From positions 248,001-312,000 of IMG/VR virus record IMGVR_UViG_3300032046_000001: DNA of 64,000 bases. The stretch is one strand, 5' to 3'. Made by a program: the position numbers and the translations under genes. The notes below the pieces were generated by a model. That model was not told where the DNA came from. It was given only the letters and a program-made list of their open reading frames with translations, and ran no database searches. Shown in pieces: positions 20,144 to 44,699 of this stretch; position 1 is the stretch's first letter, and each line of letters starts with the position of its first letter.

Positions 20144-20455
20144 TTACCAAGCTCCCTCACTTTTATATCCAAGATCTTCTATTGAACTCAAATCAAAACC
20201 TCGTTCATCTTCGAACATCTGTTTTAACCTGATTCCCTTATTAATACCTTCTTGTCTCAAACATGCTGATAAATATAAAATATCTTCTCTTAAGTTTTTT
20301 AATCGTTGAATTCTGTCTTCGATTGCTCTATTTACACCTATTGTTTGTTTGTAAGATCTTTGGCTGTCTAAATTATCAATTTCAACTTTTATCAATCTTG
20401 CGATTTCAAATAACTCTTCACCATCAAAAAATCGACCTATTATTTTATTATCCAT
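20144..20455 (-). CDS. Hypothetical protein
   Basis: ORF coupled to pncA. Confidence 0.65.
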   Translation of the reverse strand: MDNKIIGRFFDGEELFEIARLIKVEIDNLDSQRSYKQTIGVNRAIEDRIQRLKNLREDILYLSACLRQEGINKGIRLKQMFEDERGFDLSSIEDLGYKSEGAW

Positions 20456-21125
20456 TGAAATCTCGATTTATTAGATTAATCACACTATCTGTTCTAATAA
20501 AAAGAGCACCTGCTTTCATCATCTCAAATAAGGCATTCTGTTTGCCTTCCTCAGTGATATGATATATACAATCATCAATTACCCATACTTTCTTTCCTCG
20601 TTTAAGAAGACCAAGTACAGCAGCTAAAACACAGTACTCAGTTGCAACACCATATACAAAGAAAGTATCAATATCGAGATATTTTAAACAAAAATCAATA
20701 TTTTGATTACCACCTGGGTTCGTTTCATCCCAAAAAACATTATAGCTTTGTTTTTCAAAAGTAATTTGACATGCTGCATCTAAAAGAATTTTTAAAAGTT
20801 CTTCACTATACATATCTTCTGAATCAATATGTATTGAATACTCTGGTGTTGTTGATTCTTCAATTTTACTACAACCATTTGTATCATCTTCACAATGCAT
20901 TGGAAATGGTCCACCATTTACATCAAGTTCTATTTCCGCTTCTTTATGTGCGGTATCTCCAAAATGTCTATCACCACAACCAAGTATTTTAATATTATTT
21001 TCATAACCATATTTTGTTAATTTAGAAATATTTGGAATAATTTTTTCAGAATCTTTTATATATAATTTACCATTCTTGGTCATAAAATCAACTAACGTAT
21101 CTACATCAAAAAAAGCGCATTTCAT
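20448..21125 (-). CDS. pncA: Nicotinamidase (isochorismatase family)
   Basis: DVDTLVDF...G.L, D.H, FPMHC, FEK, GVATEYCV catalytic Cys. Confidence 0.92.
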   Translation of the reverse strand: MKCAFFDVDTLVDFMTKNGKLYIKDSEKIIPNISKLTKYGYENNIKILGCGDRHFGDTAHKEAEIELDVNGGPFPMHCEDDTNGCSKIEESTTPEYSIHIDSEDMYSEELLKILLDAACQITFEKQSYNVFWDETNPGGNQNIDFCLKYLDIDTFFVYGVATEYCVLAAVLGLLKRGKKVWVIDDCIYHITEEGKQNALFEMMKAGALFIRTDSVINLINRDFNG

Positions 21126-21620: not shown

Positions 21621-22802
21621 TTAGGCGATCATTTCTTCTGTTATATCATAGTCCTTTTCAGTGTCATCTCTTTCAACTTCAAATTGAAAATCAACCATTA
21701 AAGACTCAATAACAGATTTTAATCCTCTCGCTCCAATCCCCTTTCTGTCAGCGATTTCGGCAATTCTTCTTATAGCATTGTCAGTAAAATTTAAATTAAT
21801 ATTATCAATTTCTAATAATCTCTGATATTGTTTGATTATTGAATCAACTGGGTCTGTTAAAATACGAGCTAATTCATCAATGGATAATCTATTAAGTACC
21901 GACACTATTGGAATTCGGCCAACTAATTCAGGTATTAAACCATACTGAATAAGATCATCTTGTTCTAAATAATTTAATAAATCGATATCGCGTTCAGCTT
22001 TAGACATCTTTGTATTAAAACCAATATTATTTTTACATAGACGAGCTGAAACAATATCAGAAAGACCATTAAAGGCACCACCAAATACAAATAATATATT
22101 TGATGTATCCATTAACAATCGATCTCCATGTGGGTGTTTTCTTGCACCTGTTGGTTGAATATTCATTACTGAACCTTCAATCATTTTTAACAAACCAAAC
22201 TGAACACCTTCACCTGATACGTCTCGTGTTATCGATGTACTTGCTGAACTCTTCTTGGCTTTTTTATCAATCTCATCAATAAAAATAATTCCCTTAGATG
22301 CTCGTTCAACATCAAAATCACAAGCGAGTAATAACATTTGAATCATTGATTCAATATTATCACCCACATAACCTTCTTCGGTTAATGTTGTTGCATCAGC
22401 AATAATAAATGGAACTCTCAATATTTTTGATAATGTCTGTGCAAAAAGTGTCTTTCCAGATCCAGATGGACCTATTAAAAGAATATTACTTTTTTGGACA
22501 TTAAGGTTACATAGAATCTTTAACATATGATTATAGACACCAACAGAAATTATTTTTTTAGTTTTTTCTTGACCAATAATATATTGATCTAAAATAATTT
22601 TAATCTCTTTTGGTGTCATGATTTTTTGTTTTTTAGGCTTTGAATTTTTAATTTGATCAACTTTAAGATCCGAATTAATATTTTCAGCCGTTAATGCCAA
22701 TCTTGCTGTATCAATACAAGAATCACAGATACAAATATTCGGATCGCTCGATTCAATTATTAATTTATAATCTGTACTATGACAGAAGCTACATTCTCTC
22801 AT
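21621..22802 (-). CDS. clpX: ATP-dependent Clp protease ATPase subunit ClpX
   Basis: CSFC...CDSC zinc domain, GPSGSGKT, IFIDEIDK, TRDVSGEGVQ, RKHP loop, IGF loop, GARGL. Confidence 0.96.
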   Translation of the reverse strand: MRECSFCHSTDYKLIIESSDPNICICDSCIDTARLALTAENINSDLKVDQIKNSKPKKQKIMTPKEIKIILDQYIIGQEKTKKIISVGVYNHMLKILCNLNVQKSNILLIGPSGSGKTLFAQTLSKILRVPFIIADATTLTEEGYVGDNIESMIQMLLLACDFDVERASKGIIFIDEIDKKAKKSSASTSITRDVSGEGVQFGLLKMIEGSVMNIQPTGARKHPHGDRLLMDTSNILFVFGGAFNGLSDIVSARLCKNNIGFNTKMSKAERDIDLLNYLEQDDLIQYGLIPELVGRIPIVSVLNRLSIDELARILTDPVDSIIKQYQRLLEIDNINLNFTDNAIRRIAEIADRKGIGARGLKSVIESLMVDFQFEVERDDTEKDYDITEEMIA

Positions 22803-27221: not shown

Positions 27222-27488
27222 TTGTCACTTTCATTTTGTTCTGATTTTTCGGATGAATTAAATATCAATATACTCTCCCAATTTATCCTGTCTTCTGTAC
27301 AGAATTCTTCGTCGAACTTTGATGAGAAATTATCAATTATATTATTATATGCGATATTGAATTCATTATTTTTTCTTTTTTAAAACATCTTTTAATTTCA
27401 GATTTTTTAAATTATCTAATTTATTAATGTGATAATAGACTATATTATTATTAATATAGTCTTCAATTTGTCTTGTTAATTCATTCAT
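27218..27488 (-). pseudogene. Internally deleted type II restriction endonuclease remnant (PmeII-family-like), frameshifted in an A-tract
   Basis: Read manually: MNELTRQIEDYINNNIVYYHINKLDNLKNLKLKDVLK joined (other frame) to KNNEFNIAYNNIIDNFSSKFDEEFCTEDRINWESILIFNS; resembles the N- and C-termini of PmeII-type REases; ATGA overlaps at both ends. Confidence 0.6.
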
Positions 27489-28287
27489 ATAATAACTTTA
27501 AAATAATCATCAACTGTTTTAAAATATTCGTGATTGAGTTCTATTCCGATTCCATGACGATTTAACTTCGCAGCAACTTTTAACGTTGTACCACTTCCCA
27601 TAAACGGATCTAAAATATTATCATTGGGTTGTGTAAAAAGTTTTATAAACCATTCAGGAATCCATATTGGAAACACAGCACTATGATTTTTATTATTACA
27701 TTCAGTAGCACCATATAAGACATTAGTTGGATAAACCATATCTCTTTTGATCCAATTAGAGACGTTTTTTCCAAAACCACTTCCAACTTTCGATTGATCT
27801 CTAATTTTATCCGTTTCACTTAAATTTTTTAATCTTGATTGTGACCAATCACCAATTGGAATCATTACATTATCTTGAAACATGTTGAATTTTTTATCTT
27901 TATTGAATTGATAAAGATGTTCCCATGAATCACGAAATCTATTTGGCCATTTTCCAGGAAAACAGTTCTTTTTATGCCAGATGAATTCCTCAGTCCATAA
28001 CCATCCCTGTTTTCTCATAGCCAAAACAAGTTCTATTACATATGTATGTCTTTCTCCTCCAACTGCACACTCTTTTATATTTAAAATAAACGTACCTGTC
28101 GGTTTCAAGACTCTTAAAAGTTCTTGTGATATTGGAATAAACCATTCTATATATTTATCTGGATGTACACCACCGTATGTATTTTTCTCTGATTCGCATA
28201 TGGTGGAGATGTTAATATTAAGTCTATTGAATTACTATCTATTTCTTTTAATTTATCTGAACAATCACCAAGTAATAAACGTATCAA
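27485..28287 (-). CDS. N4-cytosine/N6-adenine DNA methyltransferase (beta class), one-base frameshift at 28182-28186
   Basis: Upstream frame has TTG start, LGDC, IDLILTSPPY; downstream frame has IWHK, HSAVFP, ILDPFMGSGTT; span of 803 nt is one base short of in-frame. Confidence 0.9.
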
Positions 28288-28303
28288 AACTTTTACACCT
28301 CAA

Positions 28304-31087
28304 TTATTTTATTTTCTCTCCAAGTAGGATCTTATCTATTATTCCTGAATATTGACCAACTTCAAAAAGACCTTTTATGATACTTCTTTTTGGATCTGAA
28401 AAACCAAGACTTAGAATCCATGATTCGAATGCCGGAACTTGTTGTATACTATGCCATTCTGGTTTAACATTCTCTCTATTTTCAACCAATCTCCATTTTG
28501 TATAACCACTCCACATTAATTGACTAATGACAGCTTCAATATGAATATGATGAATCTTTCCATTATTATTATAAATTTTGAATAATTTTTCTGCCATTTC
28601 ACCAGGAATTTGATTATCACTAAAATGATGAAAAGCATCACAAGCAACCGAAAGATCAGCAACAATATCATCTTGTTTTAAATCACCATCAGATTTTGCA
28701 CCTCTAATATTTGCAACACCTGACGTATGAAATGTTCTTAGAATCAATTGAGTAGACCGTTCACCTAATGTTTGTGCTGCAATAATACCAATATATTTAC
28801 TATTTAAAATCTTGTAAAGATTACCATAACATTTGTGACAAATTTTATTACTTCTACAATATATCGGTGATCTCAAAAGAATGATTTTACCAATTAGATT
28901 CTTATAATTTTCTTTTGTAATTTCAACATATTCATTATTATCATTTAAATAATAACGATATAATAACATCTCGGCTTTTTGTACAGAATCGACATTGATA
29001 GTTAAGTGATCTCTTGTTCCACAATCTTCTAAATCAAGATCCTTTTGAAGATTAACACAAGAAAAATTTAATTTTCTTGAAAGATAGCCAGATTCCCCTG
29101 TATTTAAAGCAACATCTAATAATCCTTTTCTACATCCGTATGTTGATATAAAAAATTCTTCAGGTGTTAAACCATCTAATAAACTCGATTTAACTGGTGT
29201 TGGTATAATCTCACCTTTAAAGTTCGAAATAAAACCTCTTGATAGAATAATTTGTCTTGCTTGATCCCATGTTCCTCTAGATCCAGAACTAATCATATAA
29301 GAATAGTTAAAATTTTCTTTCAAAAAGTTTTCTGTTTCCAGACTGGAAATTTTATTTAACTGGGTTACGATATTATCAGATTCATATAATTCTTTCTTAA
29401 GCGAATCATCTTTTAATTCGAATGAATCCAATGACATTGTTGGACCAAATAAGGTAGCGTATTTAAAACCGCAATTTTTAATCTGATCTAAAATTTCAGC
29501 TAGGATCGTGTAGTCATATTTTGATTTAATATCTTCTAAAATATTTAATAGTTCTTTCTTTGATATTATCTTATCAATTATAGGATAATCATTCGGTAAA
29601 CAATCATTGAATATTTTTCTACTTTCTGTAATTTTTTGACCTTTACAAACGACCATCTTTTTCAATTTTGGAAATTGATTTGAAGTTAATGCGTATATAC
29701 CAAGAATCATATCTTGAGAATGAGTAGTTGTTAATAATCCATTTGCGGGATTACTCAAATTTTTAGTTATTAAAAATTTATCATAGACTTCTTGTTTTGA
29801 TTCTTCTGATATAGGCACATATACAGCCATCTGATCACCATCAAAATCTGCATTAAAACAACCACAAACTAACGGGTGAATCTTGATTGTATTATTCCCA
29901 TGAATTCGATATACTGTTTCATTATTATCATCTTTCTTTTCGAAAATGACAGAATTATTATTATCTAATTTTATTTTGAAACCTAACATACCCAATCTGT
30001 GAAGAGAAGGTTGTCGATTAATAATACACACTTGAGGATGTTGTTCAAAATATTCTTTGACAAATTCGAATAAATAATATGATTTTGTAAGAATCGTCTG
30101 ATCTAATATTTGAATCGCACTATTAAGAAATTTAACTATTCCGCGATATGTCATTTCTTTTGCGATGTCAATTTTAAATAATTCAAGAATCATACTATAA
30201 GGTAAAATACACTCATCTAATTTCAACATTGGATCTGGTGTGATCACAGCCCTACCTGAAAAATCAATTCTCTTACCTAATATATGTCCTCTGATTAAAC
30301 CATCTTTTTCTGACATTGACGATAAAATATAACCATATAGTTCATTCACATCTTTTTGAAGTTGATGATAATATTGATAATATATTTTTTTATCATTCGC
30401 AATATCATAGTTTGTATTGGCCATAATTTCTTTTTTGGTTAATAACCTGATATAGAATCTATTTATTTTATCTACGATTTGGTTACGATTATTTTTTTCT
30501 GTGATTTTTGATGCAGGACGTAAATCAGCAGGTAAGACAATAACTTCATTAATCAATACGTTATGAATATTGTCATATATATATTTCCATTTTGGATCAT
30601 CCAACTTATATTTTGAAGTTTCATACAATAATTTTATAACAGCTCCCATTTTATCCCATCTTTCAGAATCAGATGGAATATTATTAGGATCATCTGTCAC
30701 TAAATATTTTTCACCTTTTTTATATAATATACTTCTTTCATTTGAAATTAATATATCAACCAGGGATTTAATTTTAGAACCACATAAACTGGAAATCAAA
30801 TCGTAAAAAATTGGATTCATAACTGGTAAAGGAAGTTTGATTTTTGCAAATCTTTTTCTTCTTTCACCACAATTAGTTATTTCCACACCACATATTTTAC
30901 AAACTTCACCTTCACCAGAAAGTCCATAAAAAGTTCCACATTGACATGTATAATTTTTTACTGGACCAAAAATCTGTTCAGAAAATAAACCATCTTCTGT
31001 AAATCTGCCACGATTATTAATTATTTTTGAAGTTTTGATTTCTTTCAAATCTTCACAAAAGTCATGTATATCTAAGAGTTTCGACAT
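28304..31087 (-). CDS. rpoC: Phage multi-subunit RNA polymerase beta' subunit
   Basis: GLFSEQIFGP, CQCG...CKICG, GKRIDFSGRAVI, NRQPSLHR, catalytic NADFDGDQM, GERSTQLILRTFH. Confidence 0.97.
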   Translation of the reverse strand: MSKLLDIHDFCEDLKEIKTSKIINNRGRFTEDGLFSEQIFGPVKNYTCQCGTFYGLSGEGEVCKICGVEITNCGERRKRFAKIKLPLPVMNPIFYDLISSLCGSKIKSLVDILISNERSILYKKGEKYLVTDDPNNIPSDSERWDKMGAVIKLLYETSKYKLDDPKWKYIYDNIHNVLINEVIVLPADLRPASKITEKNNRNQIVDKINRFYIRLLTKKEIMANTNYDIANDKKIYYQYYHQLQKDVNELYGYILSSMSEKDGLIRGHILGKRIDFSGRAVITPDPMLKLDECILPYSMILELFKIDIAKEMTYRGIVKFLNSAIQILDQTILTKSYYLFEFVKEYFEQHPQVCIINRQPSLHRLGMLGFKIKLDNNNSVIFEKKDDNNETVYRIHGNNTIKIHPLVCGCFNADFDGDQMAVYVPISEESKQEVYDKFLITKNLSNPANGLLTTTHSQDMILGIYALTSNQFPKLKKMVVCKGQKITESRKIFNDCLPNDYPIIDKIISKKELLNILEDIKSKYDYTILAEILDQIKNCGFKYATLFGPTMSLDSFELKDDSLKKELYESDNIVTQLNKISSLETENFLKENFNYSYMISSGSRGTWDQARQIILSRGFISNFKGEIIPTPVKSSLLDGLTPEEFFISTYGCRKGLLDVALNTGESGYLSRKLNFSCVNLQKDLDLEDCGTRDHLTINVDSVQKAEMLLYRYYLNDNNEYVEITKENYKNLIGKIILLRSPIYCRSNKICHKCYGNLYKILNSKYIGIIAAQTLGERSTQLILRTFHTSGVANIRGAKSDGDLKQDDIVADLSVACDAFHHFSDNQIPGEMAEKLFKIYNNNGKIHHIHIEAVISQLMWSGYTKWRLVENRENVKPEWHSIQQVPAFESWILSLGFSDPKRSIIKGLFEVGQYSGIIDKILLGEKIK

Positions 31088-31092
31088 TAATT

Positions 31093-31518
31093 TTATATCC
31101 CCAATTTGTGTAAATTAAAAAAATTTGATATTTTACCAATTATTGAGTTCTCTTTTTTCTCTACCTTTTTCATATATTCTTGATGATCATATGGTTCATA
31201 CTCTATATAATTAAATGGAGTGAAATAACAATTATTTAAATTATAAGTTCTGATTAAATTTTCAATTAATTTAATTAAATCATTTGATAATACTTTATAT
31301 TTGACATTAGCTGATAAACAAAATAAATCAGTATATGGATCGGCATTACAATGATCAGCATCTAATTTAATACTAATTAATTTATTTTTGCCATCTGTTA
31401 TTCTAACTGAATATTTATCAATTATATAATTTGGATCTATTTTTGTTATTCTGTAAATTTTATTATTATGAATCATTCTCTCAGGTACAAGTTTTTTTGC
31501 TATTACAAACTGTTTCAT
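31093..31518 (-). CDS. Putative ubiquitin-conjugating E2 (UBC-fold)-like protein
   Basis: HCNADPYTDLFCL resembles the E2 HPN-x7-C active site; LIENLIRTYNLNNCY resembles I..LL..PN.DSP; TAATG-coupled to the upstream ThiF-like gene. Confidence 0.55.
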   Translation of the reverse strand: MKQFVIAKKLVPERMIHNNKIYRITKIDPNYIIDKYSVRITDGKNKLISIKLDADHCNADPYTDLFCLSANVKYKVLSNDLIKLIENLIRTYNLNNCYFTPFNYIEYEPYDHQEYMKKVEKKENSIIGKISNFFNLHKLGI

Positions 31519-32411
31519 TATGCTGCACCAGACTCTGGAAGAAGATTTATAATATAATTATTTTGAGTCTGTGTAATTGAAATGATGTAATAGAGTTCAG
31601 GTTCATTTGAATTATTTATTAGATGTGACATTGTTGAAATGATATCATTAGCTGATTGAATTGAATTTTTGGGAATTTTTCTAATTGGATATTTATTAGA
31701 ATCACCAATTGTTATTAGAACATCTTTATTTCTATTCTCCTGAATTATATCAGTTACATTCTCTTCAAAATTTAATAATTTCTTAGATGCTTCATAATCT
31801 ATAATCATGTTTCTATTATTATATTTTTTCTTGATATCATTGGATACTTCATCTAAATAATCAAGAGATATTTCTTTCACTATTTGATTATCAATCATAT
31901 AATTAATAAAACCACTTTGTAGAAAAGATGTTGCTATCATTGTTGCTTTTCTTAAATCATTTTTTGATAACAGTGTTGTATATCGGCCTTCATAATTCTT
32001 ATCATATGTTATATTTTTTCTACAATCTACAACAAGATATCTGGACGTGATATACAATCTAACATCTATTTTATTTTTGCGATTATAAACAAAATCTCGA
32101 CAATCAATTATTAAATCTGAATATGGGAGTTCCGTAATTTCTTCTTCATATCTAGTTGTTAATATTTCAACATCTATATTACTTTGATCTTTTATGATAT
32201 CATGAAGAACTGTTGTTTTATATTTTCCAACATCACTCTTTCTATATATTGAATTATATGTATTCTTCATTTCAACTCTATCATAATCAACCAAGATTAA
32301 TTTTTGTAAATTATCCAGTTCGGATAATGATTGAGACAAAAAACTACCTATGGTACCAAGACCAATAACTGCTACTGTTTTTATAGAAGATTCCTCCACA
32401 ATTTTTTTCAA
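31518..32411 (-). CDS. ThiF/MoeB (E1-like) adenylation-domain protein 2
   Basis: VAVIGLGTIGS, LVDYDRVEMKN, DVGKYKT, IIDCRD; extra C-terminal domain ending LLPESGAA. Confidence 0.88.
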   Translation of the reverse strand: MKKIVEESSIKTVAVIGLGTIGSFLSQSLSELDNLQKLILVDYDRVEMKNTYNSIYRKSDVGKYKTTVLHDIIKDQSNIDVEILTTRYEEEITELPYSDLIIDCRDFVYNRKNKIDVRLYITSRYLVVDCRKNITYDKNYEGRYTTLLSKNDLRKATMIATSFLQSGFINYMIDNQIVKEISLDYLDEVSNDIKKKYNNRNMIIDYEASKKLLNFEENVTDIIQENRNKDVLITIGDSNKYPIRKIPKNSIQSANDIISTMSHLINNSNEPELYYIISITQTQNNYIINLLPESGAA

Positions 32412-32606: not shown

Positions 32607-33161
32607 TTAACCCTTGCGATCGGCAGGCTTCGTGAACTCCAGGGTCAAATCAGTCGATGTCAAAACGTAGTCGTATGCTACCTCGGTCGTACCGTTGACC
32701 AAAGCTTTGGAACCGGCAGCGATATTGAACGCTCCACTGAGCAAATTGAATACTTCCTGGACTGCATGTCCTACGGTGTCTTCGATCTCCTGTTTGTTGG
32801 TACCGCAGGTAACGACAATCTTGGTGTTGACACAGCCGTCATTGGCATTGGTGACAGTAAACGTACCGGAAACCGCAGCAAGGGCAACCCTGGTAAAATG
32901 GGCAATGAGAAGTTCCACCAAAATAGCCTTGGGTTGTTTTCCCAGACCGGACATACCATTTTCCTCGGCCAGCGTGAGCAGATCGGTAACAGACATTGCA
33001 TTCAATTGTTCCCGGCTAAGAACCTCGGATTTCTCGACCATATCGTTCTCAATTACTTTGGCAATCATCTCGACGGTCTGTCCGTCCAATCCAGTGATCC
33101 CACGTCCAGCAGCGATTTGAAGAAGTTCGGCCTTTGACTTACCATTCAGTGCTTGATTCAT
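32607..33161 (-). CDS. Ubiquitin-like (beta-grasp) modifier with two N-terminal Rho-N/SAP-like repeats and C-terminal Gly
   Basis: Repeats LNGKSKAELLQIAAGRGITGL and LNAMSVTDLLTLAEENGMSGL; C-domain IVVTCG...VGHAV..V...L...FNI..ALVNG...YVL...TLEFTKPADRKG-COOH; lies in an E1/E2/JAB locus. Confidence 0.8.
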   Translation of the reverse strand: MNQALNGKSKAELLQIAAGRGITGLDGQTVEMIAKVIENDMVEKSEVLSREQLNAMSVTDLLTLAEENGMSGLGKQPKAILVELLIAHFTRVALAAVSGTFTVTNANDGCVNTKIVVTCGTNKQEIEDTVGHAVQEVFNLLSGAFNIAAGSKALVNGTTEVAYDYVLTSTDLTLEFTKPADRKG

Positions 33162-33334
33162 AAAAATAATTCTCCTTTTGGAAATAGATTAGGTTCACTA
33201 AGTGAATCCTTTGAGATAAAATACAGCGGCGACATTAATTATTTTTTTCTATCTCCTAAATAATTATAGCACCTCCCTTTGGATTTATCCATGAAGTTAG
33301 AGAGTTAAGACAACTCTCTCTTGATGGATTCTAT

Positions 33335-33601
33335 TTACTGAGTAAATTCCTGAAGCTTTTTCACTTTTCCCTCAATCCAATCAATACGATTCTTGGCATC
33401 CTGTTGACCAGCCTTAGCAGCCGAAATCTGATGATTTAGTTTCTGCACTTTTCGTGTCAAGGATTCAATTCGTTGTTCCTCCATTTGCGATGCCTGTTGA
33501 AGTTTCTTCTCAGCAACTGCAAACATTTTCAATGCGTTACCAAGAACTGTGGGAGCAACATTAATACCAAAATGAGATAATAAAATATAAAACCAGTCCA
33601 T
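33335..33601 (-). CDS. Small coiled-coil protein upstream of the Ubl gene
   Basis: GGAGG RBS; heptad-rich; follows promoter copy 5. Confidence 0.75.
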   Translation of the reverse strand: MDWFYILLSHFGINVAPTVLGNALKMFAVAEKKLQQASQMEEQRIESLTRKVQKLNHQISAAKAGQQDAKNRIDWIEGKVKKLQEFTQ

Positions 33602-33643
33602 TACAGACCTCCTTTACAATATTAAAAAGTACGAATTGTACCT

Positions 33644-33665
33644 TTCACATATTTATTATATATAG
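33644..33665 (-). promoter_or_regulatory. Conserved phage promoter-like motif, copy 5 (variant)
   Basis: CTATATATAATAAATATGTGAA upstream of the coiled-coil/Ubl unit. Confidence 0.6.
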
Positions 33666-33717
33666 ATATAATCGTATATACAAGAATTTAAATATTTGGG
33701 TGCTTTGTATAATTAAA

Positions 33718-34419
33718 CTATACTGGGAACTGTTTGGCTAAAACTTCACCTGTGAGAATATCGAAATCATTCTCACAGGTGGTATCGAGTTGACCAAGGA
33801 TACAGATCTTGTAAAATCGACACAACACAATCCATGCCGCTCCCATGTTTGCGAATAACAATTGTGGTTCTGCTTGATGCAATGCCTCACATCCGAGACG
33901 CTGAGGGTGTTGTCCATCACCAACGGATATCTCTTCATGGTATCTGGTAATTGACGCAGTGTAGTTTTGTCCTGCAATCCGAACGTTTGTCAAAACATCG
34001 CCGGTGTAGAATCCATTACCCCCAGAAATTAAAACTACATTTTGCAGGGTAGCAACTTTTTCTGCAATCAACGCTCTGGTATCATGATTGTCAACACACA
34101 CTAATACAATATCATCTTCTTGGATGATACTACTAATGTTGCTCTCACTGAGATATTCAGGAACCGAATGGATAGTTAAATCATACTTCTGCATGAGTTC
34201 GGTGGCTTTAATCTCGGCTTTATTACCGAAGTTATAAAAATCCTGTCTCTCCCGATTACGCTGCTCGAAGCTATCTCCGTCTACGATAGTTACCTCGAAG
34301 GTGTCAGCCTCTTCGCCTTCTGCTGGTTGCGGATGATAATAATTGAGGAATTGGCACAACGGATCAAGTAATTTAGTACCAATACCACCAGCACCTATAA
34401 CTTTAATCGACCGATTCAT
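33718..34419 (-). CDS. ThiF/E1-like ubiquitin-activating enzyme (PRTRC ThiF-like)
   Basis: VIGAGGIG, VDGDSFEQRNRERQ, NKAE, CVDNHDTR, ISGGN, candidate catalytic Cys in RLGCEA, PQLLFAN. Confidence 0.92.
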   Translation of the reverse strand: MNRSIKVIGAGGIGTKLLDPLCQFLNYYHPQPAEGEEADTFEVTIVDGDSFEQRNRERQDFYNFGNKAEIKATELMQKYDLTIHSVPEYLSESNISSIIQEDDIVLVCVDNHDTRALIAEKVATLQNVVLISGGNGFYTGDVLTNVRIAGQNYTASITRYHEEISVGDGQHPQRLGCEALHQAEPQLLFANMGAAWIVLCRFYKICILGQLDTTCENDFDILTGEVLAKQFPV

Positions 34420-35611
34420 ATGCTGAAATCTCCTCTTTTGTCATAATGATTACTCCTTCAGAGTCAATCATGTTGCCATTAGAATCATATGATAATTCAA
34501 AATCGCGGTTGTTGTTTGGTGTGTGTTCACCATAACATCCCATAGTTGTCAATAATAAGTCATCGACCAATCCACCTTCCATTGCCTGAATAGCAATATT
34601 ACGATAATGACACTTTGGACAGATGGTATAATCAATTAGTGGATAATAATCTGTATCATCACTACCATAACAATCAGGACGGGCAATTGGAGATGTTGGT
34701 GAATATTCAGGAGTTTTAGCAGGACTTGGAAGATACTTCGTTTCCGACGGAACATATGTGTTGTTTGATTGGGAAGAACATTTGATAAGTTTACCACCAA
34801 CGAATTTATATACTACATCGGGTGTATAAACCATGTTCTCATACCATTCTATGGGAACCTCAACAGCATCCATATCAACGTCTAAACTAAAATGAAATTT
34901 AGTTGCAACCGATTGCGCTGTTACATCTGTCATATTATGAGTCGATACTTTAGATGCGGCATAATCTTCCCATACAGCACCCGAAGACACATACTTGGTT
35001 TCTTCCCGACTTGTGATTGTAACATCAAGATATCTTAATATTTCCTCCTCTTTAAGTTGAAATCTATTGCCGTTAATAACAATCGCTGCCGTGACCGATG
35101 GGGTATCTGTATTTATGTGTCCAAACACAATATGAATACCATCCAACTCACCCTCACTACCTTTGTCGGTACCACTATGAAACGCCGACATTGCACCACC
35201 GTGTGAGTGTAGTGTTCCAACATACATAAAATCTTTCGGTGGACTGGAATTCTTCCAATCCGTTGACGCGCCCGAAATTTTCTGATTGGGAACATCAAAT
35301 AAATAAAACTCGGTATATGGATTATAGAAAATCCGTATACCAGCTTCAGATTTGTACGTTTCATAGATCTGTTTGAAAAACTTAAGACCTTGAGCTAACA
35401 AATCTTTGTGAATCTTCGGTATCTTCATCTCCCCAAACGGTTGTAGTTTGGGGAGATGACTGATTCCATTAACCTTAGTTAAACTTCTCAATAATTGTTG
35501 ATTCTTTAGAACAAAGTTGCCGTTACCGGCAACGATGTATAAAAGATCCTGGTCTTCAGGCAAGACATAATCCTTCGGTAATATAATAACAGGAATTTCA
35601 CCAAATTTCAT
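34403..35611 (-). CDS. JAB/JAMM (MPN+) metallo-isopeptidase, PRTRC protein A-like, with C-terminal extension
   Basis: YIVAGNG.F, KSEAG, VPNQKIS, GTLHSHGGAMSAFHSGTDKGSE, GIHIVFG; start re-placed at MKFGE. Confidence 0.9.
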   Translation of the reverse strand: MKFGEIPVIILPKDYVLPEDQDLLYIVAGNGNFVLKNQQLLRSLTKVNGISHLPKLQPFGEMKIPKIHKDLLAQGLKFFKQIYETYKSEAGIRIFYNPYTEFYLFDVPNQKISGASTDWKNSSPPKDFMYVGTLHSHGGAMSAFHSGTDKGSEGELDGIHIVFGHINTDTPSVTAAIVINGNRFQLKEEEILRYLDVTITSREETKYVSSGAVWEDYAASKVSTHNMTDVTAQSVATKFHFSLDVDMDAVEVPIEWYENMVYTPDVVYKFVGGKLIKCSSQSNNTYVPSETKYLPSPAKTPEYSPTSPIARPDCYGSDDTDYYPLIDYTICPKCHYRNIAIQAMEGGLVDDLLLTTMGCYGEHTPNNNRDFELSYDSNGNMIDSEGVIIMTKEEISAYESVD

Positions 35612-35612
35612 A

Positions 35613-38027
35613 TTAATTATCCTCACTAACATTTGGAATTGTTGATGGATAATATCCATCAGAAAACGTATGAGTATTCCCATTTACAAAATTCGGGAGA
35701 CTCTCATAAACAACATGTGAATGGTTTTTAGATAATCTGGGGTCTAAAATACCATATCTCTTAAAATCTGGATTATTCTGTGAACTTACCACAGCCTTTG
35801 AACGGAAAGATCCTGTTTTCACAAAAACAGGATCAATTAACATATACAACTTTCCGAGGTATGTGTTGTCATCATTGAAAACGAATAAATTATCACTTTT
35901 GGTACATAGATCACCTGTCTGCCAAGGAATCTTGGCCAAGTTTATTGTTTCGGGTGTTCTGGCTGATGTAACTACGTTGAAGTTATTGGTTAAATCTTCA
36001 ACAGTAATTGTCAGACCATTTCCACACAATATAAGAGGCTTTTCACCATCGACAATAAATGCGTCAATTCTGTTTATCACCTTTTTCGGAAATCCTAATA
36101 TTCCAGGATTCTTAGCTTGGATAAGACCAACTTCAATACCATTCAGAGACTTGGATGCTTTCCTAATAGATCCGATGTAAACTCTACCGTTTGATAGGTT
36201 GATATATTGAGAACTAGTTGTTTCTTCACCACATCGTAATTCAAAATTCAAATAACCATTTGATCTGGCAAATGCTGTAATCGTCCAGATTTTACCAATT
36301 GTATCAGGATTGTTCCAGTTAGGACATACAACCTCATCACCAACACTGAAATTGATATCGACATCATATGATGGTATATGTAACTTGGTACCATCATTCG
36401 TCAATATATCCTCAAGTGCTGTTTCGCGGAAGAAAGTACTGCTCCAGATATTGGATGAGTCGTTACTGGAAAAAATGCCTATGCCTTTTACAATACGAAA
36501 ATCTCGATCGGTTATAATCTGATCCAAAAATCTGAATGTTCTGGATTGAGTAATCCTTGGGTCATTTGCTTCAAAAATTGAGAAATCACCATTATAGATT
36601 GAATCTACAGAGATTCCTCGCTCATCACCATCACCACCGAAGAATATGTGGAGAATGTTGTAAGAATTATTCTGAATACGAAGCATTCTCCCGGTGAAGT
36701 AGGTCCGATATTGATTATTAAAGATCACATAATCCTTACCAGAAACCAATTCAGTATCGCCAGCCTTCACAGAATCGATTACGTCATATGTACCATCCAA
36801 TGCCAGAAAGAACTTTGAACCGATGACGAATTCAATCGTATTATCTCTGGCTAACCTAATCTTATCTACAACCTCATAGGTATTCATAGATTTGATTTTG
36901 ATTATTGTGCCTGATGATACGGTTTTACCATCAACTGTTAATGATTGTAAATAATTCGTTCTTTGAGCGGCAACATCTGTTTCCCATTGGGCTAATAAGG
37001 CTGGTGTTAACTCAACAGTAATTTTTTCATTATTGAGATTAACCAGTTCCACCTGTTTAGGTGTATTAAAATTTCCCCTAATGGTATCAATATACCAATC
37101 TGCTTCTTCATATATTAATTTGTCGCCAATACTTACGACGCTCTCAACTAACCTGAAATTTTGATATATGGTTGATCCATTACCTCCAGATAGTTGTTCG
37201 TCAAGTGGTACAACAAACACTCTCTCAAAGGTTGGAACTGTTCTAGAGACAACAAAAGTATCAATCTCCTGATACAATGTTTTATCGTGCATTATCAATG
37301 GAATGTTAAATCCGAATGTTGGTTTTTGACTAGCCATTGACCAAGCCAGAAAGGAATTCATCGGCGGTGTATTCTTGTATTTATCATGACGACAGCGATA
37401 TTCCGCTGCAAATGGTGCTGCCCAATACAGAGCAATTAATTCTTCAACAGCAGATGACAGAGTATGAGTTTGTTTTGACCATGAACGTTTGTTACCACCA
37501 AAACAAACTTCATTGCCACTACTAACATTAAATAAATTTGCATATCCCAAATAGTCGCCGGATGCTCCCAATGGATGATTTCGGAAAAATACCCGACAAT
37601 AGGGAACTTCAAATACATCCTTTTTTTCCTGAACGAAGAGAAGAAACACTATATATGGTAATTGGATTCGGAGCGAGTACGGTATTTGTTGCCCTTCCAG
37701 CAACGATTCTAGTCCTAGTGCCGCCTGTCCACTCTTCTTGGTTGTTCTTGTTTCTTCAACAAAATCCCAGTCAAACTTCAAATGTCTTGATCTTGGAGCT
37801 TCCTCAATAACCAGAACTCTTGCACCACCTGAGCATGGAATATTTAATCTACAATTCCTGGGCAAAACATGACAGTCAGATCCCAACTGACTGGTAATTC
37901 GGGCAATATAATCTGCTGTTCGTATTAATTTTTTCCTGAAGACTGGTTGGGCTTCACCATTTTCTCCAATAATGGATTCAACAAACGATGTAGTTTCTTT
38001 GTCGATTATTAACGTGGGATTTGTCAT
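35613..38027 (-). CDS. Prokaryotic E2 family D-like (PRTRC protein B-like) domain fused to ~550 aa of uncharacterised beta-rich domains
   Basis: LPYIVFL, FFRNHPL, YANLFNVSSGNEVCFG, YWAAPF..WS..S in the N-terminal ~250 aa. Confidence 0.75.
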   Translation of the reverse strand: MTNPTLIIDKETTSFVESIIGENGEAQPVFRKKLIRTADYIARITSQLGSDCHVLPRNCRLNIPCSGGARVLVIEEAPRSRHLKFDWDFVEETRTTKKSGQAALGLESLLEGQQIPYSLRIQLPYIVFLLFVQEKKDVFEVPYCRVFFRNHPLGASGDYLGYANLFNVSSGNEVCFGGNKRSWSKQTHTLSSAVEELIALYWAAPFAAEYRCRHDKYKNTPPMNSFLAWSMASQKPTFGFNIPLIMHDKTLYQEIDTFVVSRTVPTFERVFVVPLDEQLSGGNGSTIYQNFRLVESVVSIGDKLIYEEADWYIDTIRGNFNTPKQVELVNLNNEKITVELTPALLAQWETDVAAQRTNYLQSLTVDGKTVSSGTIIKIKSMNTYEVVDKIRLARDNTIEFVIGSKFFLALDGTYDVIDSVKAGDTELVSGKDYVIFNNQYRTYFTGRMLRIQNNSYNILHIFFGGDGDERGISVDSIYNGDFSIFEANDPRITQSRTFRFLDQIITDRDFRIVKGIGIFSSNDSSNIWSSTFFRETALEDILTNDGTKLHIPSYDVDINFSVGDEVVCPNWNNPDTIGKIWTITAFARSNGYLNFELRCGEETTSSQYINLSNGRVYIGSIRKASKSLNGIEVGLIQAKNPGILGFPKKVINRIDAFIVDGEKPLILCGNGLTITVEDLTNNFNVVTSARTPETINLAKIPWQTGDLCTKSDNLFVFNDDNTYLGKLYMLIDPVFVKTGSFRSKAVVSSQNNPDFKRYGILDPRLSKNHSHVVYESLPNFVNGNTHTFSDGYYPSTIPNVSEDN

Positions 38028-38056: not shown

Positions 38057-39040
38057 TTAATTTCTCTTATCTGCATGGATTAGATCATTATAATCGTATG
38101 CAGATGTCATGATACAACTCGTCCAATTACATCCCTCACAAACTTTATTTTGGTCATATTGTAAATTATTTTTCAATTCATCCAGATTCATTAAATATTC
38201 ATCAATTGTCATTGATGGTGTTTTCAATCCTCTGATTCTTAAACATAACCTAACCATACCATCTGCATCGATAACAATATTATCCAGTGATTGAACATGG
38301 CATTTGAAATTATAGGGTAAATTTTCATATAATATCTTCAAACTTTGAGGCATATGAATATTATAGTTTTTTGCCTGTTCTAATATTTCTTTCAATTCAG
38401 GTGTTTTGTGGACTATCAAGTCGCTATTTTTTTCTATTCCAGCAAAATCATAATATTTATTTTTATAAGCATCAATAAAAGATATTACACTATTGATACC
38501 ATGACCAGTTAAAAGTTCCAATGTTTTAATTAAATATTTATAATTTCTGCTATCACATGTTACTTCCGCAACAGGATCTTTTATTCTGTCTTTATATTTT
38601 AATAAACAATTCAATCCATAGAGACTTTTAAAATATCTGTCCTTATCATACTGTTCACTGAATATTATGGGGTCGATTGAAGTTGTAAAACCCATTACTT
38701 CTCCAACTTCTGAAAAAAATCGATCTAATAAATCTGTACATGTACCATTAGAAATTATCGTGTATAAAATACTGTTTTCATTACAGTATTTTATAATATC
38801 AATTAAGTCATTATGAAGTAATGGTTCACCTCCCATAAAAATATGAAAACATTCTGGATTATTAATTTTCATCAAGTCCAGTATTTTCACTATATTAATA
38901 TATTTAATTTGATACTTATTAAAATAATAAATATTTGGATATGGAGCATCGAGATAATATTTTGCAATCCTACAATACTCACAGCTTAAATTACATTGTC
39001 TATTCAAAAACCAAGTCATGACCTTTATATCTTTTATCAT
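38057..39040 (-). CDS. Radical SAM enzyme with SPASM/twitch-like C-terminus
   Basis: CNLSCEYC, MGGEPLL, ISNG, IDADGMVRLC, CEGCNWTSC. Confidence 0.92.
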   Translation of the reverse strand: MIKDIKVMTWFLNRQCNLSCEYCRIAKYYLDAPYPNIYYFNKYQIKYINIVKILDLMKINNPECFHIFMGGEPLLHNDLIDIIKYCNENSILYTIISNGTCTDLLDRFFSEVGEVMGFTTSIDPIIFSEQYDKDRYFKSLYGLNCLLKYKDRIKDPVAEVTCDSRNYKYLIKTLELLTGHGINSVISFIDAYKNKYYDFAGIEKNSDLIVHKTPELKEILEQAKNYNIHMPQSLKILYENLPYNFKCHVQSLDNIVIDADGMVRLCLRIRGLKTPSMTIDEYLMNLDELKNNLQYDQNKVCEGCNWTSCIMTSAYDYNDLIHADKRN

Positions 39041-39450: not shown

Positions 39451-40446
39451 TTAAAAGGTGTATGTCAAAGCACCAATGCTCTGGTTCTGACTAAGTTGCC
39501 AATCGGCATAGTGTGTCAGTTCGAGGTCGAGATTTTTGATTCCAGTTGGTAAAGTAATCGCTACTGCATGACCATTATCGAATGGGAAATCAATATCAGC
39601 CATTATTGATTTCGAATCAATTTCTCGATAATTATAGTCAACTGTTACCTCACCTATTCCTAACTTGGCACCAGCCAACCAGGACACAACATTATCACCA
39701 ACAGTCACAGCATAATCACCGTATATAGATGATGTATCATAGCCGATTTCAGCCATTGCCTCCCTATAGGCATTCCCTTCATAGAAATCATAATATCCGA
39801 CTGCTCCAACAATATATGCCTTATCGCCGATCTGGATGCCGATCTGACCACCATTCATAACATCATTGAAATATCCACCAGTGGCAAAACACGAAAGAGT
39901 CCGGTCATCATTAACAGCGAAATAGTTGGATGCAACACCTTCTCCACGAAAGACATCAGTATCGAACAAAAGACCAGAATCACCAGGAGTCTGAAATGGT
40001 AATTCGCTTTTACCGAGATGTAATTCAAGACCTGGAAACAAATCCGGGGTAATATTCAAATTGGCAACATCAATCATGGCATCATCTTGTTGTTGATCAC
40101 CAACTTGTTGGGTTCCAGTATTAAGTCGAAAATACAAATCGGCCTGATTATCCAAAGCAATACCGAGGCCAAACCGGATGCGATAATCCTGGGAATATTC
40201 ATTGAGTTGGTGATCATACAATGTGCGATAACGGGCATCACCATCAACAAAGAATTTAGAAGGATCTGTAACGCCGGGATTTTCTCTCTCGAAAATTTCC
40301 CACTCTTCCTCAGCGGTTTCAGCATAGACGGTATCCTCAGTTCTGAGACTGGTGGTTGTACCTTCTTCATAGGTGTTGAAAGCATAGACATTGATATGAG
40401 CAAAGAGCACCAACAATAAAACAAACACGACATAATACTTTTTCAT
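39451..40446 (-). CDS. Outer-membrane beta-barrel protein (putative porin family)
   Basis: Signal peptide AYA-like cleavage, GDARYR, RIRFGLG, GKSELPF..LLFDTD, alternating beta strands, C-terminal LTYTF. Confidence 0.8.
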   Translation of the reverse strand: MKKYYVVFVLLLVLFAHINVYAFNTYEEGTTTSLRTEDTVYAETAEEEWEIFERENPGVTDPSKFFVDGDARYRTLYDHQLNEYSQDYRIRFGLGIALDNQADLYFRLNTGTQQVGDQQQDDAMIDVANLNITPDLFPGLELHLGKSELPFQTPGDSGLLFDTDVFRGEGVASNYFAVNDDRTLSCFATGGYFNDVMNGGQIGIQIGDKAYIVGAVGYYDFYEGNAYREAMAEIGYDTSSIYGDYAVTVGDNVVSWLAGAKLGIGEVTVDYNYREIDSKSIMADIDFPFDNGHAVAITLPTGIKNLDLELTHYADWQLSQNQSIGALTYTF

Positions 40447-41959: not shown

Positions 41960-44158
41960 TCACAATTTTAGTTCTTCATCAGCCTCAATCTGGTCGATAT
42001 GTCGATGACTTATTAGAAACATACATTTATTTTTTGTTAAATTTTTCAATACTTTAGATACTCGATAAATATTCTCATCATCAAGTGTATCAAATATCTC
42101 ATCAAATAATAATAAATTAAATTTAATATCTTGCACACTACTTTGTAAATCACAAAGAGTCAGAATTATGGCAATATCTAAAATTCTAACTTGACCTGCT
42201 GAAAAATTTTCTCTTGAATTAGATAGTGTAACATTATCAAGTACATTCAAACTTATTTTATCACAATACTCATCAGAACTCTTTAATTTTTTCAATGTAT
42301 CAAATGTGACAATATATCTACCAAATGAAATATCATTTAAATACTGAGCAATACGTGTATTCATAAATGGAATTGATTCATCAATCAACATACTTTCAAT
42401 TCCACTTTTTGAAAACGCATCTTTCCAGAATAATAGAACATCATTCTTCTTTTTTAATTCAATATTTTTTGATTTTAAATTTTCAATTTCAGTCATTGTT
42501 TCTTTTATCTTCTTATAACATGACTTCAATCTACTATCATCATATTTTTCAGATTTTTTTAATTCAATTAATTCTTGATATTTTTTAATATCAGCTTCAG
42601 TTGATATTATTTGATCTTTCAATTCTTGAATTTTAAGAACAATACGATTCAACATATCTTTTTCTAATTCAAAATCTTTAATTTTTTCAGTTAGTTCTGA
42701 CCTTTGTTGTTTTATATCTTGAGTTTTATTTGTGACTGCTTCGTTCGCTAATTTCTGTAGTTCCTGAAGTGAATTTTTAAAATTTAAATCAAGTTCTTTT
42801 ATATCTGCTTCAAATTTTGATTTTAAATTATCTGTCTCACTTTTTATAGTAGTAAACTGACTATTTAAATCTTCTGATTTTTTCAACCATTCACTTTTTA
42901 ATTGTCCGATTTTTAAATATTGAACTTTATTCTCTTCTTCTAAATTTTTAATTTTATCTTTAAGAGATTCAATATATTGATTTAACTTTGTTTTTACATC
43001 TTGGTCAATTACCTGTTGACATGTTGGACACACAGACACAGTATTTCTAAAAATATCATTAAAAAATTTTTGTCTCTCTTCATCTAAATTTATAATAGTT
43101 TGTTTACTAAATTGAATTGAATTCTCTATGGTTTTAATTTCATTACTAACAGAAGCCTCATCTAATTTTTTATTAGATCTAATTATATTTGACTGATCAT
43201 TCAATTTTGATAACGTAGAATTATAATCATCGGTTAATTTAATCTTCTTTTGACTACGAAAACTATCCATCTCGTATTGTTTATTCTGAAGTTTTATTTT
43301 GATTTGTTCAATGATATTATTTAATTGAGAATCTAATTCTAATAATTGTCGATTATGATTGGATAATCTATCATTAACTAACTCTAATTTAATATTCACT
43401 TCATTATCATTTAATTCGGATAAATTATGTTTCAGTTCAACTCCACGACTGTTCAATCTTATAATATCATTCTCATATTCTCTGACTTTATTTTCTTTTA
43501 ACTTACCAAATTCGTCTTTTTCTTTATTTAACAATAGAATATGATTTTTCAGGTCTTCAATTATATAAGTTTTCGCTGAATTTTGATTTTCAATTCCAGT
43601 TGATTCTTTTTGAAGTAATTCTATAAGTTCAGATGATTTCTTGTTATATGTGACATAATCATCTAATTTTAATATTTTTCTGAAAATTTCTTTTTGATCA
43701 GTATCACTTAATTCAGTAAAGAAAGTTTTATTTTTCTGACCAAATAACAAAGTACTGAAAAATAATTTTTTAGGAATCAAGATTTTTTCTAATTCGGCAA
43801 CTACTTCTTGACTTCCTCTTTTATAAAGAACACCATCTCTTGTTAAATGTGCAGTATCTCCAAGTTTTGTATGACCATAATATCGTTCAGCTTTATAATG
43901 GGTATCATTAATATCAAATTCAACATAGGTATAACAATCTTTCTGGGTTCGATTATTAATGGCACTTTTTCCTCTTATACCTTTACTTGTAGCACCAAAT
44001 AACGTGAAAGGAATTGAATCAAATATTGTAGTTTTACCAATACCATTCGGACCATGAATCAAAATAAGTTTATTATTTTGAATTTCAATTTCAAATAATT
44101 CATCTCCATAACAACAAAAATTTTTAAATCCGATTTTTTTAAAATTAACTTCTTTCAT
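41960..44158 (-). CDS. sbcC: SbcC/Rad50 (gp46-like) recombination ATPase
   Basis: GPNGIGKTT, coiled coils, CPTC zinc hook, FSAGQ signature, LLFDEIFDTLD, ISH. Confidence 0.95.
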   Translation of the reverse strand: MKEVNFKKIGFKNFCCYGDELFEIEIQNNKLILIHGPNGIGKTTIFDSIPFTLFGATSKGIRGKSAINNRTQKDCYTYVEFDINDTHYKAERYYGHTKLGDTAHLTRDGVLYKRGSQEVVAELEKILIPKKLFFSTLLFGQKNKTFFTELSDTDQKEIFRKILKLDDYVTYNKKSSELIELLQKESTGIENQNSAKTYIIEDLKNHILLLNKEKDEFGKLKENKVREYENDIIRLNSRGVELKHNLSELNDNEVNIKLELVNDRLSNHNRQLLELDSQLNNIIEQIKIKLQNKQYEMDSFRSQKKIKLTDDYNSTLSKLNDQSNIIRSNKKLDEASVSNEIKTIENSIQFSKQTIINLDEERQKFFNDIFRNTVSVCPTCQQVIDQDVKTKLNQYIESLKDKIKNLEEENKVQYLKIGQLKSEWLKKSEDLNSQFTTIKSETDNLKSKFEADIKELDLNFKNSLQELQKLANEAVTNKTQDIKQQRSELTEKIKDFELEKDMLNRIVLKIQELKDQIISTEADIKKYQELIELKKSEKYDDSRLKSCYKKIKETMTEIENLKSKNIELKKKNDVLLFWKDAFSKSGIESMLIDESIPFMNTRIAQYLNDISFGRYIVTFDTLKKLKSSDEYCDKISLNVLDNVTLSNSRENFSAGQVRILDIAIILTLCDLQSSVQDIKFNLLLFDEIFDTLDDENIYRVSKVLKNLTKNKCMFLISHRHIDQIEADEELKL

Positions 44159-44699
44159 TACTCTTCCTTAATTTTTTAAAAAAATAATCTTTTATTAAAT
44201 TATTATCAATAATAGATCTTTCTTTATTTTTTTGCCATGTTATATACCAAGGACCATCTTCATCATGAGTCATATTTGATAATTGAATTCCTGTAAATTT
44301 ATCGAAAGTTTTATATATCTCATTTAAAAATGATATTTTAAACTCATCATAAATCATTGGTATGAATGGTTTTCCTCCATCATAATCAATAGCATAACGA
44401 GTAATCGGATCATTTCCAAATTCAGACACAAATTCAAAATATATTTGTGGTATTACAATACCATATGACCATGCTTCAATATGTGAATTAAATAAGATAT
44501 CATTTTTGATTGCTAAATAATATCCATAGGATAAATATAATAAATTTTTTAATTTCATAAGATCTACACCAAAACTATAAAGGTGCCAAAAATAATTAGC
44601 TATGGCTTTGACATTTAAGGAAGAATCTACAATTGGAATACAATCACACTTTTCCAAAAGGTAGATTCTCTCTTTTAAATAATTATAGTGTTTTATCAT
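44145..44699 (-). CDS. Panacea (SocA/GepA, DUF4065) antitoxin-domain protein
   Basis: AIANYF, MKLKNLLY, IEAWSYG.VIP.IY, QLSNMTH..GPW. Confidence 0.88.
   Translation of the reverse strand: MIKHYNYLKERIYLLEKCDCIPIVDSSLNVKAIANYFWHLYSFGVDLMKLKNLLYLSYGYYLAIKNDILFNSHIEAWSYGIVIPQIYFEFVSEFGNDPITRYAIDYDGGKPFIPMIYDEFKISFLNEIYKTFDKFTGIQLSNMTHDEDGPWYITWQKNKERSIIDNNLIKDYFFKKLRKSNERS

Follow-up and report, generated by a model that had tools for sequence, protein, structure and literature searches.

A putative E2 protein with a six-barrel array in a ubiquitin-like gene cassette conserved across a jumbo phage clade

Bacterial conjugation of ubiquitin-like proteins (Ubls) has so far been studied as host defence, as in Bil and in the Cap2 enzymes of CBASS, or has been left uncharacterised, as in the PRTRC systems. 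The E2-like proteins of Iyer-Aravind class 6d possess an absolutely conserved histidine C-terminal to the catalytic cysteine (PMC1779556). UBE2O contains a ubiquitin-conjugating (UBC) domain and five SH3-like domains, the latter of which guide substrates to the E2 cysteine without an E3 (PMC12818219). Here, a gene for an 804-amino-acid (aa) protein with an E2-like domain and an array of small barrels, termed P0001, was analysed together with its neighbourhood in a 64,000-nucleotide stretch (the window) of the IMG/VR virus record IMGVR_UViG_3300032046_000001. This record is a complete jumbo phage genome of 312,420 bp with direct terminal repeats. The window comprises record bases 248001-312000, has a guanine-plus-cytosine (GC) content of about 0.28 and carries every gene on the minus strand.

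The open reading frame (ORF) of P0001 was uninterrupted over 804 codons, and a ribosome-binding site was present.

35613-38027, minus strand: E2-barrel fusion protein P0001, 804 aa, open frame; stop codon at 35613-35615

On balance, P0001 is probably the E2-type enzyme of a phage-encoded Ubl cassette, in which the barrels would serve as a binding platform for a target or a partner. Its identity as the E2 of such a cassette, taken alone, is highly probable. The N-terminal part of the protein comprises the following elements.

37242-38027, minus strand: E2-like domain, residues 1-262, consisting of an N-terminal beta-rich extension (residues 1-88) and a UBC-like core (residues 89-262)
37503-37505, minus strand: codon of the candidate catalytic Cys175
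37527-37529, minus strand: codon of Asn167

An AlphaFold2 model of the 804-aa protein, generated with 93 homologs as input, had a mean pLDDT of 89.4, and a second model covering residues 618-804 reached 91.3. The ESM Atlas model of the same protein was poor (pLDDT 0.48), so that its structural neighbours were meaningless. In the AlphaFold2 model the secondary structure elements of residues 89-260 followed the UBC order, and Cys175 and Asn167 were located between the strand 159-162 and the helix 190-203. Both residues, which lie eight positions apart, were 100% conserved in 149 homolog sequences; P56, E75, P124 and Y217 were likewise invariant. The same eight-residue spacing between asparagine and cysteine is found in the HPN…Cys motif of UBC enzymes such as UbcH5. 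Prok-E2_D (PF14460) matched 68 of the 149 homolog N-terminal domains at E<=0.01 (best E 8e-9), and PRTRC_B matched 22 of them (best E 1.5e-4), P0001 not being among the latter. No histidine C-terminal to Cys175 was conserved: H214 was kept in 10% of the sequences, and the invariant residue in this region was Y217. A sequence-profile search of the Protein Data Bank (PDB) returned nothing for the E2 domain. The initial annotation, made from the sequence of the window, had proposed a Prok-E2_D-type domain here; at the family level this assignment is well supported, and the N-terminal domain is predicted to be E2-like, of the Prok-E2_D or PRTRC-B type.

A word-based search recovered five close homologs of P0001, and an exhaustive profile search recovered 335 representative clusters, 170 of them at E<=1e-30. 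The family members were nearly all 800-900 aa long and aligned end to end. Searches with the E2 domain only or with barrels 5-6 only found almost no shorter proteins. Since stand-alone E2 or barrel proteins are thus hardly found, the fusion of the E2 domain with the barrels appears to be old and fixed. One of the few shorter proteins was the second half of a split gene on a JGI contig (L032:2-2133), on which the E2-barrel gene is divided into two overlapping ORFs (381+ and 335 aa) by a frameshift or sequencing error; the remaining cassette of this contig was intact. Ten clusters that were looked up came solely from metagenomes and had no name attached. Scans of the full 804-aa protein against Pfam, PHROGs, NCBIfam and PADLOC gave no matches. 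As tblastn against 50,697 phage records was also empty, no cultured relative is known. Prokaryotic genomes scanned with patterns from the close homologs contained no relative and hence gave no clue to the host. A family of at least 335 sequence clusters, so far without annotation, is named by this analysis.

The part of the protein that follows the E2-like domain was divided into six barrels.

36960-37181, minus strand: barrel 1, residues 283-356, with the VSIGDKLIY hairpin at residues 298-306
36771-36959, minus strand: barrel 2, residues 357-419, with the VSSGTIIKI hairpin at residues 370-378
36402-36770, minus strand: barrel 3, residues 420-492, and extra strands, residues 493-542, with the LVSGKDYVI hairpin at residues 427-435
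36168-36401, minus strand: barrel 4, residues 543-620, with the FSVGDEVVC hairpin at residues 560-568 and the invariant W571
35952-36167, minus strand: barrel 5, residues 621-692, the segment of highest conservation in P0001 (R622, G634, F646-P-K-K, D660, P664, L667, N670, T673 and F683 conserved)
35616-35951, minus strand: barrel 6, residues 693-760, and C-terminal beta tail, residues 761-804, with the WQTGDLCT hairpin at residues 702-709 (Q703, G705 and D706 conserved, P763 and R764 invariant)

The initial annotation had noticed a recurring sequence pattern in this ORF and had read it as SH3/KOW-like small-barrel modules placed after the E2 domain. The AlphaFold2 models and the structural matches bear this out: residues 283-760 form six small barrels of the SH3/Tudor/KOW/BAH kind, and the "xSxGDx" strings that had been quoted are the opening hairpins of five of them (barrels 1, 2, 3, 4 and 6). 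Domain parsing and Foldseek, which had been proposed as checks, returned six small barrels and matches to small-barrel families only, for each of the six. With the full model, Foldseek searches of the PDB and BFVD gave only multi-barrel matches of low template-modelling (TM) score (Spt5, DDB1 and unnamed phage proteins), and the sole match of the PDB sequence-profile search was NusG (E 0.015, barrel 2-3). A match of the barrel region to a known enzyme or structural protein was looked for and none was found. The absence of a RING or other E3, also claimed initially, held as well, as residues 283-804 had neither conserved cysteine or histidine residues nor a Pfam match. A second catalytic E3-like site or a zinc site in the barrels was rejected for lack of any conserved cysteine or histidine, which excludes RING-, HECT- or RBR-like activity.

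A recent duplication of the barrels was also rejected. Profile-profile comparison gave 75.7% probability over 24 columns for barrels 1 and 2 and less than 30% for the other pairs; because this similarity is weak, the barrels are not recent repeats and their repetition is at the level of the fold. Identity to 84 distant homologs was 0.25 for the E2 core, 0.33 for barrel 4, 0.38 for barrel 5 and 0.16-0.21 for barrels 1, 3 and 6. The lowest entropy of the whole protein was found at residues 621-680, and conserved polar residues were concentrated in barrels 5 and 6 (R622, K649, D660, N670, T673, Q703, D706 and R764). A hypervariable receptor was rejected, barrels 4 and 5 being conserved above the E2 core. 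The idea behind the initial annotation that variability among homologs would reveal a diversifying specificity module was therefore not borne out, as barrels 4-5 are the best-conserved part. The strong conservation of barrels 4 and 5 indicates either that the target is conserved across the phage clade or that these barrels dock partners from the cassette.

The gene of P0001 is followed by genes for a complete set of Ubl-related partners and preceded by a radical SAM gene.

34403-35611, minus strand: JAB/JAMM metallopeptidase-like protein, 402 aa (PRTRC_A TIGR03735, E 2e-10; Prok-JAB, E 0.016)
33718-34419, minus strand: ThiF1, minimal E1-like adenylating enzyme, 233 aa (Pfam ThiF, E 3.9e-13; PRTRC_ThiF, E 1.3e-10)
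32607-33161, minus strand: Ubl, 184 aa, two Rho_N/HeH-like motifs followed by a ThiS/TGS-like beta-grasp
31518-32411, minus strand: ThiF2, second E1-like protein, 297 aa (Pfam ThiF, E 7.4e-13)
38057-39040, minus strand: radical SAM/SPASM-like protein (rSAM), 327 aa (Pfam Radical_SAM, E 1.1e-8)

The real start of the JAB gene is the ATG at 35611, one base past the stop codon of the E2 gene (TAA-T-ATG) and preceded by GAGGA; the two genes are translationally coupled. The JAMM residues (Glu, H-S-H, Ser and Asp) were retained in 28 JAB homologs, and the 28 ThiF1 homologs retained GxGGxG, D110 and C177. The last residue of the Ubl is a glycine (…LEFTKPADRKG). The motif LEFxKxxGxKG occurred in all 25 distinct Ubl homologs from related loci, with the glycine being terminal in 19 of them and followed by a short tail in the other six (seven of 27 loci listed). 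In one relative (L019:14338-15294) two complete Ubl units are arranged head to tail, like a polyubiquitin precursor. When 26 Ubl members were compared with Pfam, Rho_N matched 19, TGS 15 (best 1e-7), ThiS 14 (best 7e-5) and Ub-Mut7C nine; Rho_N covers the N-terminal part, and the three beta-grasp families cover the C-terminal part. As judged from these profiles, the product of 32607-33161 is a predicted ubiquitin-like modifier, which had been missed by the initial annotation. ThiF2 ended in [LI][LI]PE[TS]G[AGS]A, an LPXTG-like sequence with glycine at position -3, in 25 of 26 homologs. Its C-terminal domain of about 100 residues, for which Pfam gave nothing informative, might represent a further C-terminus that is processed, a domain recruiting the E2 or one half of an E1 heterodimer formed with ThiF1. 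The rSAM gave NCBIfam matches of weak E-value to PapB, viperin and MoaA-like models, as well as similarity to NirJ. In 27 of the 28 related loci described below its gene was located a short distance upstream of the E2 gene, and it was missing only from the cut ends of L007 and L030; it is directly adjacent to the E2 gene in the window and in its closest relatives, and one or two small ORFs lie between the two in L003.

The composition of this block could also point to a sulfur-carrier or small-molecule pathway, in which a ThiS/MoaD-like carrier, ThiF and the radical SAM protein would cooperate with the E2-like cysteine, which would relay a thio or acyl group, and the substrate bound by the barrels would be a nucleic acid or a metabolite. 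The Ubl matches MoaD models in addition to ThiS, and two ThiF proteins accompany an rSAM that, with its weak MoaA, NirJ and PapB similarity, stands upstream of the E2 gene nearly everywhere. Sulfur carriers, CysO for example, are also among the proteins that JAB peptidases process. However, the sulfur-carrier pathways known so far work without an E2-like protein that has an invariant cysteine and asparagine, the tandem Ubl precursor and the Rho_N fusion resemble a protein modifier, and Pfam and NCBIfam scans revealed no sulfurtransferase or rhodanese domain in the block. Such a pathway, including the substrate-binding role it would give to the barrels, is very improbable.

The cassette was compared with 28 related loci (three Logan/JGI contigs and 25 IMG/VR contigs). 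All of them had the same order of genes, namely SbcD, SbcC, further genes, rSAM, E2-barrel, JAB-like, ThiF1 and a Ubl of 150-190 aa, followed by variable small genes, ThiF2, p141 and RNA polymerase beta' and beta. Gene order was identical across the loci though the E2 protein was only about 25% identical. This context, a set of the phage's own Ubl, E1 and JAB peptidase beside its RNA polymerase genes, had been absent from the initial annotation. The E2, JAB, ThiF1, p88 and Ubl genes form a compositional island (32607-38027) with a GC content at third codon positions (GC3) of 0.30-0.54, which falls to 0.13-0.21 in ThiF2, RNA polymerase, rSAM and SbcC on either side; L001, a related locus, showed this contrast as well. 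The island genes were 69-76% identical to those of L001 and L002, the flanks 82-92%. The higher GC3 together with the lower identity suggests that the core of the cassette was replaced by a copy from a relative of higher GC content.

The position directly upstream of the RNA polymerase beta' and beta genes, found in 28 of 28 loci, raises the question whether the barrels bind nucleic acid or RNA polymerase and thereby place the E2 domain, and the attachment of the Rho_N-Ubl, on transcription or replication complexes. The structural neighbours Spt5/NusG KOW, CarD, Mfd RID and PcrA/UvrD Tudor all bind RNA polymerase, and the Ubl carries a Rho_N/HeH motif. However, these structural matches tie with Tudor, BAH, SH3, Hfq and ribosomal barrels at an equally low Z and for this reason single out no function. 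Moreover, the barrels are not basic overall: the family mean net charge was -4.8 for barrel 4 and +3.8 for barrel 5, the whole protein is acidic, and the net charge shows no sign of a general nucleic-acid binder. Adjacency within a replication and transcription module of a phage is weak evidence in itself. Recruitment to polymerase or nucleic acid as the role of the barrels is therefore regarded as distinctly unlikely.

Co-variation was assessed with pairwise distances after removal of the RNA polymerase beta' signal, which is a weak test, given that the distances are saturated and depend on one another. The residual distances of the E2 domain gave partial correlations of 0.54 with JAB, 0.48 with ThiF1, 0.37 with Ubl and -0.04 with ThiF2. 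Those of barrels 4-5 correlated slightly with Ubl (0.31) and ThiF2 (0.36), whereas barrels 1-3 and 6 showed no residual co-variation with JAB, ThiF1 or Ubl. These values bear on the possibility that the barrels are an assembly scaffold docking ThiF1, ThiF2, JAB or the Rho_N part of the Ubl, with target choice residing elsewhere, for example in the Ubl. The slight correlation of barrels 4-5 would agree with a scaffold, as would their conservation, which is like that of an obligate interface, and the small size of ThiF1, whose 233 aa leave no ubiquitin-fold or other extra domain to recruit an E2. A single chain comprising both E2 and E1 is found in other bacterial systems of this type (Iyer 2006, PMC1779556). 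The lack of co-variation of barrels 1-3 and 6 argues in the opposite direction, six barrels far exceed the need for docking one partner, and complex prediction supported no pair; the sole pair that was run, the E2 domain with the beta-grasp of the Ubl, gave an ipSAE of 0.00, which is no verdict. A role of the barrels as scaffold alone is thus considered unlikely.

In the favoured reading, the JAB peptidase would first trim the Ubl in those relatives in which it has a short tail or a tandem copy. ThiF1, possibly together with ThiF2, would then adenylate the C-terminal glycine of the Ubl, which would move as a thioester onto Cys175, with Asn167 playing the part of the asparagine in the UBC HPN motif. 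We infer that the Ubl would pass from the E2 straight to its target without a separate E3, the six barrels, which possess no catalytic residues, acting as a fixed platform for protein binding, from which the target or cassette partners would reach Cys175. The principle would be that of UBE2O with its five SH3-like domains. Given this precedent, the narrower reading of the initial annotation, that the barrels are a built-in substrate receptor, is plausible by analogy but tentative. In view of the conservation of the barrels and of the syntenic core position of the block near RNA polymerase and replication genes, the target would most likely be a conserved phage or host protein.

Several points weigh against this reading. 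The match of P0001 itself to Prok-E2_D reached 16.1 bits (E 0.0097), under the Pfam cut-off of 25, and the co-fold of the E2 domain with the Ubl gave no verdict on binding in either direction. Docking of E1, JAB or Ubl would explain the conserved barrels equally well, and sulfur or cofactor chemistry, in place of tagging, could be the function of a ThiS-like Ubl beside ThiF and radical SAM proteins. A literature search covering PRTRC, Prok-E2 and phage-encoded E1, E2 and JAB proteins found no functional or biochemical study of the E2-barrel family and nothing on any function of PRTRC-type cassettes.

The kinds of components found here, a Prok-E2_D-type E2, ThiF, JAB, a ThiS-like Ubl and small barrels, are known. 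The fixed fusion of E2 with six barrels, the Rho_N-Ubl and the fact that the cassette belongs to the core of a jumbo phage clade are new. Here, uncultured jumbo phages of a wide clade carry the whole set of Ubl, E1, E2 and peptidase genes as a conserved core, beside their own RNA polymerase. It is conceivable, though doubtful, that this clade carries a core E3-independent Ubl pathway in which the E2/E3 hybrid tags a conserved transcription or replication component of phage or host with the Rho_N-Ubl. If the E2-barrel fusion picks its own targets, E2/E3 hybrids arose independently in phages and eukaryotes. If the reading is true, the cassette would be the first complete virus-encoded Ubl cascade in a bacteriophage and a new route for phage protein remodelling during infection, and it would offer a compact system of four or five genes without an E3 for dissecting barrel-directed Ubl targeting.

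The cassette lies in a jumbo phage module that is devoted to replication, nucleotides and transcription. Scans of the window identified type II topoisomerase subunits, a helicase, DNA and RNA ligases and SbcCD around the cassette, along with full-length RNA polymerase beta and beta', nicotinamide adenine dinucleotide (NAD) salvage genes and seven tRNAs. The tRNA genes (His, Lys, Asp, Leu, Trp, Ile(tat) and Glu) form a cluster at 152-2052 on the minus strand. The NAD-related set consists of an NMNAT-like/CoaE fusion (9965-11131), a NAPRTase-domain protein (13585-15591), an NAD synthase (17670-18440) and an isochorismatase/nicotinamidase-like protein (20448-21125), and resembles a phage pathway for NAD+ salvage or reconstitution. 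A ClpX-like AAA+ unfoldase with a zinc-finger N-terminus (21621-22802, minus strand) is separated from the upstream RNA polymerase beta gene by two small genes, and no ClpP was found among its tested neighbours. An N6/N4 DNA methylase of 207 aa (27485-28355; PF01555, E 4e-32) separates the RNA polymerase beta' and beta genes; as these adjoin in relatives such as L001, the methylase gene is probably an insertion. Between rSAM and SbcC lies a gene for a 331-aa protein (39451-40446, minus strand) with a signal-peptide-like N-terminus, a weak porin-like match (PF16930, E 1e-4) and a GC content raised to 0.41, which is kept only in the closest relatives. Finally, an antitoxin-like SocA/Panacea-domain protein (44145-44699, minus strand; PF13274, E 4e-11) is encoded directly upstream of SbcC, and L001 has one too.

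Among the closest known systems of the cassette are PRTRC and class 6d (PF14460, TIGR03735-03737). As in these, separate genes for E2-like, JAB and ThiF proteins stand in the order B-A-ThiF on a mobile element, a Ubl is encoded alongside, and profile similarity is weak but consistent in all three proteins. However, the phage scores were all far below the equivalog cut-offs of the NCBIfam PRTRC models (TIGR03734-03742; 40.6 vs 101.8 bits for PRTRC_A and 41 vs 144.75 for PRTRC_ThiF). In the 312-kb genome ParB_N (PF02195) and PRTRC_C had no match, and the only PRTRC_E match (E 6e-4, 17.9 bits vs a cut-off of 37.95) was found inside an unrelated 1103-aa frame. In contrast to class 6d, the phage E2 lacks the invariant histidine after the cysteine. 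The phage cassette further differs in its ThiS/TGS-like, Rho_N-fused Ubl, in the 520-residue barrel array of its E2 and in its second ThiF, and it resides in a jumbo phage instead of a plasmid or an integrative and conjugative element. Because of the scores below the cut-offs and the absence of ParB and PRTRC_C, the cassette is regarded as a distant relative of the PRTRC/class 6d core and not as a member.

Bil (BilABCD) and the Cap2/Cap3 systems of CBASS share with the phage cassette an E1, an E2, a JAB peptidase and a Ubl or Ubl-like C-terminus, likewise without an E3. In PADLOC, ThiF2 weakly matched Cap2-type E1-E2 models and BilD, and the E2 protein matched none. Whereas Bil and CBASS are host anti-phage defences with an E2 that is short or fused to E1, the cassette described here belongs to the conserved core of the phage's own genes. 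In the fold of the single barrels and their tandem layout, the array is like the KOW arrays of Spt5/NusG and the tandem Tudor/BAH readers: Spt5 was the top Foldseek match (E 8.7e-5), and the triple Tudor of SETDB1 spanned barrels 1-3. However, only single barrels superpose, the TM-scores over several domains being 0.07-0.15 with a root-mean-square deviation above 11 Å, and the NGN domain of Spt5/NusG is lacking in the phage protein. UBE2O, the human E2/E3 hybrid, matches in architecture only. As in P0001, one chain contains a UBC-type domain and SH3-like barrels without RING, HECT or a second catalytic cysteine; the order is reversed, with the phage barrels located C-terminally, and P0001 has six barrels instead of five. 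Since no UBE2O chain occurred among the structural matches listed, the likeness appears to be an analogy, which probably reflects convergence.

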